Shown here: positions 22,220 to 24,475 of the stretch, in pieces
Layout: the number at the start of each line of letters is the position of its first letter
Position numbering within the stretch: the first letter of the stretch is position 1
Assembly (NCBI GenBank): GCA_950097015.1
Contig: CATNEN010000034.1
Location: forward strand, 3,286,001 to 3,350,000
Length of the DNA: 64,000 nt
Source of the DNA: Macrostomum hystrix
Lineage: Eukaryota > Animalia > Platyhelminthes
Direction of reading: 5' to 3'
Notes under the pieces: model-generated
The model's database searches: none
Seen by the model: the letters and a program-made list of their open reading frames with translations, nothing else
What the model was told of the DNA's origin: nothing
Program-made: the position numbers and the translations under genes

Positions 22220-24475
22220 ATGTACCGCCTGCTGCTTCCAGCCCTGCTGACCGTGACGGCAGCCCTCGCACTGACTCCGGCCTACGGTGAGCCTCTGAGG
22301 GAGACAGACAGACAGACAGACAGACAGACAGACAGACAGACAGACAGACAGACAGACAGACAGACAGACAGACAGACAGACAGACAGACAGACAGACAGA
22401 CAGACAGACAGACAGACAGACACCCAGCACAGACAGACAGACAGACAGACAGACAGACAGACAGACAGACAGACAGACAGACACCCAGCACAGACAGACA
22501 GACAGACAGACAGACAGCCAGACAGCCAGACAGACACCCAGCACAGACAGACAGACAGACAGACAGACACCCAGCACAGACAGACAGACAGACAGACAGA
22601 CAGACAGACAGACAGACAGACAGACAGACAGACAGACAGGCAGACAGACAGACAGACACCCAGCACAGACAGACAGACAGACAGACAGACAGACAGACAG
22701 ACAGACAGACAGACAGACAGACAGGCAGACAGACAGACAGACACCCAGCACAGACAGACAGACAGACAGAAAGACAGACAGGCAGACACCCAGCGCAGAC
22801 AGACAGACAGACAGACAGACAGACACCCAGCACAGACAGACAGACAGACAGACAGACAGCCAGACAGCCAGACAGACACCCAGCACAGACAGACAGACAG
22901 ACAGACAGACACCCAGCACAGACAGACAGACAGACAGACAAACAGAGAGACAGACAGACAGACAGACAGGCAGACTGACACCCAGCACAGAAAGACAGAC
23001 AGACATACAGACAGACAGACAGGCAGACAGGCAGACAGGCAGACAGACGGACAGACAGACAAACAGACAGACGGACAGACAGACAGGCAAGCTGTTCTCA
23101 ATCGCAGGCAGTGTGATGTACGCCGAGGACAGGCTGGTGTCGGATCTGATTGGGTCGCTCAGCTCATTCGGTGCCATCGCCAAGCCGCCGGGCATGAACG
23201 TCAGCGAGCCTGTGCAGGTGAAGCTGGGCTTGACGCTGAACCGTCTGCTGTCGCTAAAGGATAATGTGGCCAGGTTTGACGTCTGGCAGACCATGGTGAG
23301 AACACTGTCTAGCTGTTCCGTCTGTACAGAACAACAGTAGAGTTCTGTGAGCGCACTGCGATATGTCATTGCAGGAATGGACGGACCCCAGGCTGACTTG
23401 GGCCCCGAGTGAATACGAGAACCAGACTGAACTGGTTCTGCCAGCGGATCTGGTGTGGCTGCCGGACATCCGGCCATATAATGCGTGAGTGACTACTATT
23501 TTTAATACTCAACCGTGCTCAATGATAGAGCACTGATTGTAAAATCTGGACAGATGAATCCCAACTCAACCAAGAGGAGCTGTAGAAGGGCTGGTAGCTC
23601 TGGCACATCATCTGGTGACAATTCTGCTCATTCCGCTGACTCCTGAGCACACACGCACGCAGATACCGTAAGCAGGCTCAATATTGCTAAACACCATCTC
23701 ATTCTCAGGGAGGAGTACAAGCCAAACAAGGAGTTTGTTCGTGTGACAGTTGGCTATAAATCAGTGCTCAAATACGTGCTGCCAGTCACACTGAGTGCCT
23801 ACTGCCTGCCGGCGAATAGATCCAGGCATTGCAGTCTGAAATTCGGAAGCTGGTCCTACAATGGAGATCAATTGAGCATTAGCTTGAGTGACGAATCGGG
23901 TATTGACATGTCTACTTTTGTCGCTGATGATCGCTGGAAAATTGTTAGCAGCAACGCCGAAGTCTTAATTCAAGTTTACGACTGCTGTCCCTACCCATTC
24001 ATCTCCGTCATGTACAACTTCAAGTAAGTTGGGGGAAATCGTTCCGCAAAAAAGATCAATGGTCTACACTTTTCCTTGGTCTAAAGCTAATAGATCTGAT
24101 GGACCTGTCACGCCTAGAGTGAGGTGGATAAAGGTCATTGAAGGCCAGTGGTTGGTGAAGGAGTGAGGTGGCGAAGGTTTGATTTGACGAACGAGTGAGG
24201 TGATGTAGTGAGGTGGCTGGTGGAGTGAGGTGGCTGGTGGAGTGAGGTGGCTGGTGGAGGGAGGTGGCTGGTGGAGTGGGGTGACTGAGGACGTGAGGAA
24301 GGTTGTGTGAGTGGGTGGAAGAGTGCGGTAGGTAAGGAGTGAAATGGAGGGGAGTGAGGTCCATTGTGATGTGAAATGTGGATTGTAGTATCCACTTAGT
24401 GTTCTTTAGTTTGAGCGCATGTGATTCTCCTTCCGCAGGCTCGAACCAACCGGACGGCGCCGTTATCCAGAATGA
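22220..24475 (+). CDS. Secreted acetylcholine-binding-protein-like (nAChR extracellular domain only), about 240 aa
   Basis: Exons 22220-22286 (signal peptide [23 protein letters not shown]), 23108-23295, 23375-23484, 23709-24023 and 24439-24475. Without the last splice, the frame stops at 24027. Motifs: [37 protein letters not shown]-x-x-[12 protein letters not shown], loop C YDCCPYP. No TM-coding exon follows. Confidence 0.85.
22303..23088. repeat. (CAGA)n microsatellite with cacccagca interruptions, intron 1 of AChBP-like gene
   Basis: Seen directly. The same motif family occurs at 36690-36790 and, reversed, at 53225-53893. Confidence 0.97.
23575..23675 (-). mobile_element. SINE family A fragment, intronic
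   Basis: ggcacatcatctggtgacaattctgctcattccgctgactcctgagcacacacgcacgcagatac matches the family A body. Confidence 0.75.
24115..24380. repeat. GGAGTGAGGTGG-family repeat
   Basis: Tandem gtggagtgaggtggctg units. Confidence 0.8.

Follow-up and report, generated by a model that had tools for sequence, protein, structure and literature searches.

Acetylcholine-binding proteins (AChBPs) are the main structural surrogates for nicotinic acetylcholine receptors and have a natural role as secreted transmitter buffers. They have been described from gastropods, from a bivalve/abalone branch of ACCBPs, from the annelid Capitella and, as a putative protein, from a spider (PMC4569296, PMC3423370). We searched the literature for AChBP terms together with flatworm names and met no flatworm AChBP. 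Here, we describe a gene in a stretch of 64,000 nucleotides (nt) of the Macrostomum hystrix genome (the window; C34:3286001-3350000), which we refer to as gene A. It lies on the plus strand at 22220-24475; position numbers are window coordinates unless another contig is named. Gene A shows each defining feature of the AChBP format that could be tested on the sequence, and we class it as a new member of a known format, in a new phylum. We consider it likely that it is an intact, functional macrostomid gene for a secreted protein of ~215 mature residues that consists of a nicotinic-type ligand-binding domain (LBD) only. The architecture presented here comprises the predicted exons, a signal sequence, homology to the LBD, the lack of a channel exon, a solvent-type Cys-loop, the kept aromatic and disulfide residues, and a paralog. 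The last of these, paralog B, is a second LBD gene devoid of transmembrane (TM) exons, on contig C2.

The original prediction had placed a soluble AChBP-like gene in a probable flatworm. A flatworm host is borne out by a single-exon receptor of the same genome, whose best match is in Macrostomum lignano (70% identity), followed by further M. lignano paralogs and then by trematodes and cestodes. The same prediction took AChBPs to be established in molluscs and Capitella. Both have indeed been described, but the range is wider and takes in the putative spider AChBP (PMC4569296) as well as LBD-only proteins of 215-245 amino acids in a nemertean and in amphioxus.

Gene A resembles the molluscan AChBPs (Aplysia californica, PDB 2BYN/3SIO; Haliotis discus hannai AChBP 2, ABU62818) in several respects. 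Like them it has a signal peptide and an LBD only (~210-220 mature residues), ends ~15-25 residues past the vicinal Cys-Cys pair, has a hydrophilic Cys-loop that lacks FPFD, and keeps the loop A Tyr, the loop B Trp, the loop C Tyr with Cys-Cys and the loop D Trp. It differs from them in overall sequence (27-31% identity), in the length of the Cys-loop (8 residues, against 10-13 in the aligned molluscan proteins) and in the second loop C Tyr, which is Phe in gene A. The gene structures differ as well, as the BgAChBP genes of the snail Biomphalaria are reported to share only intron 1 with receptor genes (PMC3423370), whereas gene A keeps receptor-type introns. An LBD-only protein of Capitella teleta (P0051, ELU00305.1) has the same format and also an 8-residue Cys-loop, at 29% identity, and shows that the LBD-only format exists outside molluscs within Spiralia. 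Binding has been demonstrated experimentally for the published Capitella AChBP, to which P0051 may correspond, whereas the flatworm protein is a prediction from the genome. The putative CsAChBP of the spider Cupiennius salei is likewise LBD-only, with an atypical Cys-loop, and likewise stands outside the molluscs and annelids; it belongs to another phylum, however, has a Cys-loop of 16 residues instead of 8, and is derived from a transcript where gene A is a genomic sequence (PMC4569296). Gene A is unusual in how short its Cys-loop is, in having introns of the receptor type and in belonging to a family of two genes.

Read directly from the sequence, gene A has five exons (Table 1), with GT-AG ends at every intron. 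Joined from their window coordinates, the exons give a spliced coding sequence of 714 nt (238 codons) with no internal stop. The start codon stands in the context CCACCATG, with an in-frame TGA 15 nt upstream.

TABLE 1 Features of gene A in window coordinates, and location of its paralog.
Feature	Position	Strand	Description
Exon 1	22220..22286	+	Signal peptide; ends in phase 1, donor G/GTGAGC
Intron 1	22287..23107	+	821 nt, nearly all (GACA)n microsatellite; GT..AG ends
Exon 2	23108..23295	+	Mature N-terminus, N-terminal helix EDRLVSDL, beta-1/beta-2, loop D Trp (DVWQTM); ends in phase 0
Exon 3	23375..23484	+	110 nt; EWTDPRLTW ... WLPDIRPYN, WxPD motif, loop A Tyr; ends in phase 2
Exon 4	23709..24023	+	Short Cys-loop, loop B GSW, loop F, loop C YDCCPYPF, beta-10; ends in phase 2, donor AA/GTAAGT
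Intron 4	24024..24438	+	415 nt; GT at 24024-25, acceptor ttccgcag with AG at 24437-38
Exon 5, coding part	24439..24475	+	Finishes Lys codon; predicted 11-residue hydrophilic tail, TGA 24473-24475; no membrane anchor
Polyadenylation signal AATAAA	24637..24642	+	162 nt past the stop codon; direct reading
Paralog B	C2, ~8,983,563-8,985,137	-	Loci L013, L018, L022; the genome's most similar locus, matches all three LBD exons

The 3' end can be read in two ways, and both agree with the earlier claim that the frame closes right after beta-10. With intron 4 retained, NFK is followed immediately by a TAA (24025-24027); with intron 4 spliced, the frame runs into exon 5 and reaches its TGA 12 codons past the exon 4 junction. 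Because both readings stop before any TM segment, the predicted protein is TM-less either way. The exon 5 acceptor has a strong polypyrimidine tract (14 pyrimidines out of 20), and a Pfam search of exon 5 in both frames returned no family match. An alternative exon 5 frame, which would give a 54-residue extension from ARTNRT, was rejected on account of a phase mismatch and the lack of a family match; the canonical AA/GT...AG/G junction is preferred.

Tandem repeats lie in and around the gene. The array in intron 1 extends over 22302-23086 with a period of 4 and ~193 copies (Tandem Repeats Finder), and carries recurring CACCCAGCA interruptions. Intron 4 contains a short array of a G-rich 17-bp minisatellite (unit ~AGTGAGGTGGCTGGTGG) at 24207-24318, and the same minisatellite occurs on both flanks of the gene, at 21549-21838 and 24749-25489.

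We searched databases exon by exon; merged exons served only for the local alignment, the hydropathy profile, the tree and the classifier. The product of exon 1 begins with a basic residue, which is followed by a hydrophobic core of 15 residues and by small residues, before the mature N-terminal helix. On the Kyte-Doolittle scale, hydropathy averaged over 19 residues reaches 1.75 at the N-terminus and does not exceed 1.04 after residue 25. Judged by residue pattern and hydropathy, this reads as a typical secretory signal peptide. The LBD family PF02931 matches both exon 3 (E 9.5e-9, profile positions 56-91) and exon 4 (E 1.2e-9, profile positions 106-210) above the Pfam gathering score. Since each of the two exons passes that score independently, the predicted LBD is not a chance match. 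Jointly they span profile positions 56-210; in homologs, the part that corresponds to exon 2 is the N-terminal helix with beta-1/2. The signal peptide and nicotinic-type LBD that had been proposed for this locus are both upheld by these results. Among sequences in the PDB, the top matches of exon 4 are Aplysia-type AChBP chains ("soluble acetylcholine receptor") at ~1e-11, ahead of alpha9, alpha1 and alpha7, and those of exon 3 are the alpha4/beta2 nicotinic receptor.

The ligand-binding motifs DVWQ, PDIRPYN, GSW and YDCCPYPF, the last with its Tyr-to-Phe change, all read as predicted, and the aromatic box is largely kept. In precursor numbering, the binding residues are loop D Trp82, loop A Tyr120, loop B Trp170, and loop C Tyr212, Cys214-Cys215 and Phe219. 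Four of the five aromatic-box positions are retained, the fifth (the second loop C Tyr) being Phe219 and still aromatic, and the vicinal Cys-Cys pair is present. Both disulfides are kept.

Gene A has neither of the marks of a channel subunit, as there is no PF02932 four-helix domain in the window and no 13-residue aromatic-P-x-D Cys-loop. A six-frame PF02932 scan of the whole assembly (220,453,370 bases in 42 contigs) gave 153 matches, none of them within the window. A hidden Markov model (HMM) built from ten TM domains of the same genome found nothing credible in any window open reading frame (ORF) of at least 20 amino acids. The method works, because the same TM HMM recovers the TM exons of three receptor paralogs, our positive controls, at 0.3-3 kb past their LBD exons. 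We also scanned all 204 AG acceptors that lie after exon 4 and before the next gene, and just one hydrophobic continuation emerged (ORF 26263-26646). We rejected it as a TM exon: it is a single hydrophobic stretch, has no Pfam or TM HMM match, and overlaps the 3' end of the neighboring gene. Three minus-strand window ORFs (14954-15340, 19946-20203 and 3055-3354) are matched by a TM-bearing ORF of the genome (L007); they belong to no Pfam family and were judged unrelated to a channel. The claim had been that no TM exon appears before the next gene, and by all three scans (PF02932, TM HMM and acceptors) it held across the whole 64-kb window. The next gene downstream appears to be a convergent neighbor of gene A, because its Pfam-matching ORFs lie on the minus strand.

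The Cys-loop of gene A consists of 8 hydrophilic residues, LPANRSRH (mean hydropathy -1.56), with no FPFD-type motif, and is five residues shorter than the canonical loop. A HMMER search with exon 4 against 1.84 billion cluster representatives gave 761 matches at E <=0.001, of which 150 were listed and classified. Among the listed homologs, a 13-residue aromatic-P-x-D Cys-loop is found in 64 of the 68 with a TM helix after loop C, and in 2 of the 52 that end <=35 residues past the Cys-Cys pair. Across the 150 listed homologs, the type of Cys-loop splits soluble from channel proteins almost perfectly. In AChBPs the length of the loop varies, and the loop is no longer coupled to a pore (PMC4569296). 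The length seen in gene A is shared with Mytilus proteins as well as with those of Capitella.

Many of the top exon 4 matches are proteins of 215-245 amino acids in which the alignment stops ~10 residues short of the C-terminus. The LBD-only proteins whose sources we looked up come from oysters, Nucella, abalone, Mactra, Lottia, Mytilus, Capitella, the nemertean Lineus and amphioxus, and are mostly labeled "receptor subunit-like"; one homolog cluster (P0104) includes the published Haliotis AChBP 2. Two examples are proteins of Branchiostoma belcheri (P0023, XP_019645020.1, 235 amino acids) and Lineus longissimus (P0147, XP_064620059.1, 233 amino acids), which are LBD-only, have non-canonical Cys-loops and are annotated merely as receptor-subunit-like. 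With such proteins present in amphioxus and a nemertean, the AChBP format is probably under-reported in its phyletic range, and it may be much more widespread than its literature states. Three other database models, P0010 (987 amino acids), P0001 (580 amino acids) and P0002 (1181 amino acids), have three or four LBDs in tandem ahead of a single TM domain (Pfam) and could be either fused models of tandem genes or genuine multi-LBD proteins.

Paralog B repeats the organization of gene A. It has a signal-peptide exon with the same end phase and content as exon 1 of gene A, and the same four intron positions and phases throughout; exon 2 of gene A matches its counterpart at E 8.9e-10. Its Cys-loop has 9 hydrophilic residues, its loop C reads YTCCPESY with both tyrosines kept, and its charged, hydrophilic tail is followed by an AATAAA. 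The TM HMM found no TM exon within 20 kb of it. The two genes are 38% identical overall, and a profile of both exon 4 sequences matches genes A and B alone in the whole genome. Out of 26 family-conserved positions, gene A keeps 22 and paralog B 21, against medians of 23 for soluble homologs and 24 for TM homologs, and two derived states, Tyr to Leu and Gly to Ser, are common to both genes. Because both retain the disulfides, WxPD, the aromatic box, signal peptides and open frames at 38% identity, we regard them as under constraint and functional rather than as relics.

A phylogeny against receptor and AChBP sequences had been proposed as a check. Our maximum-likelihood tree contained 85 LBDs: A and B; 31 soluble, 26 TM-bearing and 3 unclassified database rows; and 23 receptors from the same genome, including the five most similar. 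Gene A and paralog B form a pair (support 97/89) inside a mostly soluble group of 28 rows (80/91), of which 24 are soluble, with the Haliotis AChBP 2 cluster among the nearest neighbors. No receptor of the same genome falls into this group, nor into the surrounding group of 41 rows (96/78). Common descent with the mollusc and annelid AChBPs is weakly favored by this tree. The placement is not secure, given its modest support, long branches and a choice of database rows that followed similarity to exon 4. In an approximately unbiased (AU) test, moving the pair beside the nearest receptor clade of its own genome was not rejected (delta lnL 36.9, p 0.138). Pairwise identities of the genes are nearly equal on the two sides, at 26.5-31% to AChBP-type proteins and 24-29% to receptor LBDs. 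A profile classifier of soluble versus receptor sequences, correct in 70 of 73 cases on leave-one-out, put both genes on the soluble side, at +10.9 bits for gene A and +43 bits for paralog B.

The introns, unlike the tree, point toward a receptor-type source. Gene A and paralog B share all three LBD introns, in position and phase, with the most similar receptor of the genome, at C2:6.82 Mb. One of these is the intron after exon 2; another is a phase-2 intron in the 12th codon past the Cys-Cys pair, after which the pre-M1/M1 exon comes next in the receptor. In two other receptors of the genome, this phase-2 intron after beta-10 is missing or lies elsewhere. The receptor at C2:6.82 Mb is nicotinic-type with M1-M3 exons downstream, and groups with the single-exon receptor L040. 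It differs from gene A in its 13-residue FPFD Cys-loop and its M1-M4 exons, is 28% identical to it, and stands outside the group of A and B in the free tree. The intron positions point to a receptor-type gene as the source of A and B, and the simplest path is most likely one in which a short terminal exon took the place of the M1-M4 exons, at an intron that was already present.

These observations raise the question as to whether flatworms evolved the AChBP format on their own. A nicotinic-type receptor gene like the one at C2:6.82 Mb would then have lost M1-M4 at the phase-2 intron after beta-10 and gained a mini terminal exon, and its product would have been duplicated into two long-lived secreted paralogs. 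We put this forward tentatively, as a possibility that we hold to be somewhat more doubtful than probable.

By analogy with known AChBPs, the gene A product might act as follows. The signal peptide would be removed, and the LBD would fold with its two disulfides. The subunits could then form a soluble ring, most likely a homopentamer as in the solved AChBPs. Cationic ligands (acetylcholine, choline and nicotinic toxins) may bind at the interfaces, where Tyr120, Trp170, Tyr212, Cys214-Cys215 and Phe219 of one subunit would meet Trp82 of its neighbor. Because there would be no pore, sequestration would be the only possible effect. The protein might buffer acetylcholine or choline near cholinergic synapses or act as a decoy for nicotinic toxins; these are the two roles that the original prediction put forward for it, and we, too, infer them by analogy. 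As to its origin, the ancestor would have been a receptor-type gene whose M1-M4 exons were swapped for the short terminal exon at the conserved phase-2 intron after beta-10.

Several points weigh against a functional, secreted AChBP. Exon 5 is predicted from splice signals, and gene A as a whole is a gene model read from the genome. A close ortholog was not found among ~15 billion proteins: there was none above 43% identity in the HMMER search, a word-index search produced one candidate and no match, and the ESM Atlas returned generic PF02931 fragment clusters only. Once the Cys-loop columns are masked in the classifier, gene A scores -5.9 bits and becomes marginally receptor-like, while paralog B stays soluble-like at +21.7. 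Three otherwise conserved positions are changed in gene A (Tyr to Leu, Gly to Ser and the second loop C Tyr to Phe), so that its ligand affinity or specificity may differ from that of classical AChBPs. Finally, pentamer formation, secretion and acetylcholine binding are all properties that we infer for the protein from its relatives.

Of the other explanations, the one that survives best accepts a secreted LBD-only protein and gives it another role. The protein could bind some other small cation or amine, have a structural or matrix role like molluscan ACCBP, or join receptor subunits on their way through the secretory pathway, as a modulator or a dominant negative. The genome, with more than 150 Cys-loop receptor loci, offers possible partners, and the identity to characterized AChBPs is just 27-31%. 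In addition, the physiological roles of AChBPs are reported to be unclear, and the bivalve and abalone relatives are ACCBPs (PMC4569296, PMC3423370). Because the second loop C Tyr of gene A is replaced by Phe, and the two further substitutions could likewise shift affinity or specificity, this stays a real alternative. However, the four retained aromatic-box positions and the vicinal Cys-Cys pair are hallmarks of nicotinic agonist sites, paralog B has both loop C tyrosines, and the Phe of gene A is itself aromatic. On this balance, we consider another role unlikely.

Gene A could also be a decaying, non-functional remnant of a receptor gene that has lost its channel exons. The missing close ortholog would fit a remnant, as would the microsatellite and minisatellite arrays that surround the gene and a Cys-loop that has lost five residues and its coupling motif. 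Yet soluble members of the family normally have a short hydrophilic Cys-loop, and all five exons are still in frame. Their splice sites are canonical, the start codon stands in a good context, and a poly(A) signal is present. Moreover, at 38% identity the two genes still keep 21-22 of the 26 conserved positions, both disulfides and the signal peptide. A relic is, to our reading, very unlikely. Least probable of all is that gene A makes up just the 5' portion of an ordinary receptor gene, with its M1-M4 exons outside the window or split off by misassembly: a distant M1 exon is formally conceivable, as the last intron sits exactly at the LBD/M1 intron of the nearest receptor paralog, but the 40 kb downstream hold no TM exon, the minus-strand ORFs of the neighbor suggest convergence, a strong acceptor, a stop and an AATAAA follow 0.4-0.6 kb past exon 4, the Cys-loop lacks the motif present in 64 of the 68 listed channel-bearing homologs, and paralog B, which lies on a different contig, is equally truncated and lacks a TM exon within 20 kb.

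Elsewhere in the window, a 49-bp tandem repeat of 10.7 copies (94% match) occupies 27245-27769, and the GC skew is strongly positive at 34-36 kb and 58-64 kb, which are other G-rich stretches. The genome itself has a very large Cys-loop repertoire, with at least 153 TM-domain and at least 156 LBD matches; many are single-exon ORFs of 400-520 amino acids, and some receptors stand in tandem clusters (for example C39 8.37-8.38 Mb, C11 3.96 Mb and C10 1.49-1.52 Mb). The single-exon receptor L040 (G000:C10:1766700-1769500) and its M. lignano ortholog (P0167) have no vicinal Cys-Cys pair and a long loop F insertion, and relatives of L040 include trematode proteins labeled acetylcholine-gated chloride channels.

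Taken as a secreted AChBP-type family, the flatworm pair would extend the AChBP format to another phylum, with the route from receptor to soluble protein readable from the shared introns. Macrostomum is amenable to transgenesis and RNA interference, and with these genetics the in vivo role of such a protein could be tested there. Flatworm nicotinic receptors are targets of anthelmintics. A soluble flatworm LBD might be a crystallizable stand-in for them, yet at ~28% identity it would be no closer than molluscan AChBPs are. If the format did arise independently in flatworms, Cys-loop receptor families would have given rise to soluble transmitter-binding decoys repeatedly and convergently, and not in a single mollusc/annelid lineage, and flatworms would regulate their (inhibitory) cholinergic signaling, or neutralize nicotinic toxins from the environment, with a version of their own.

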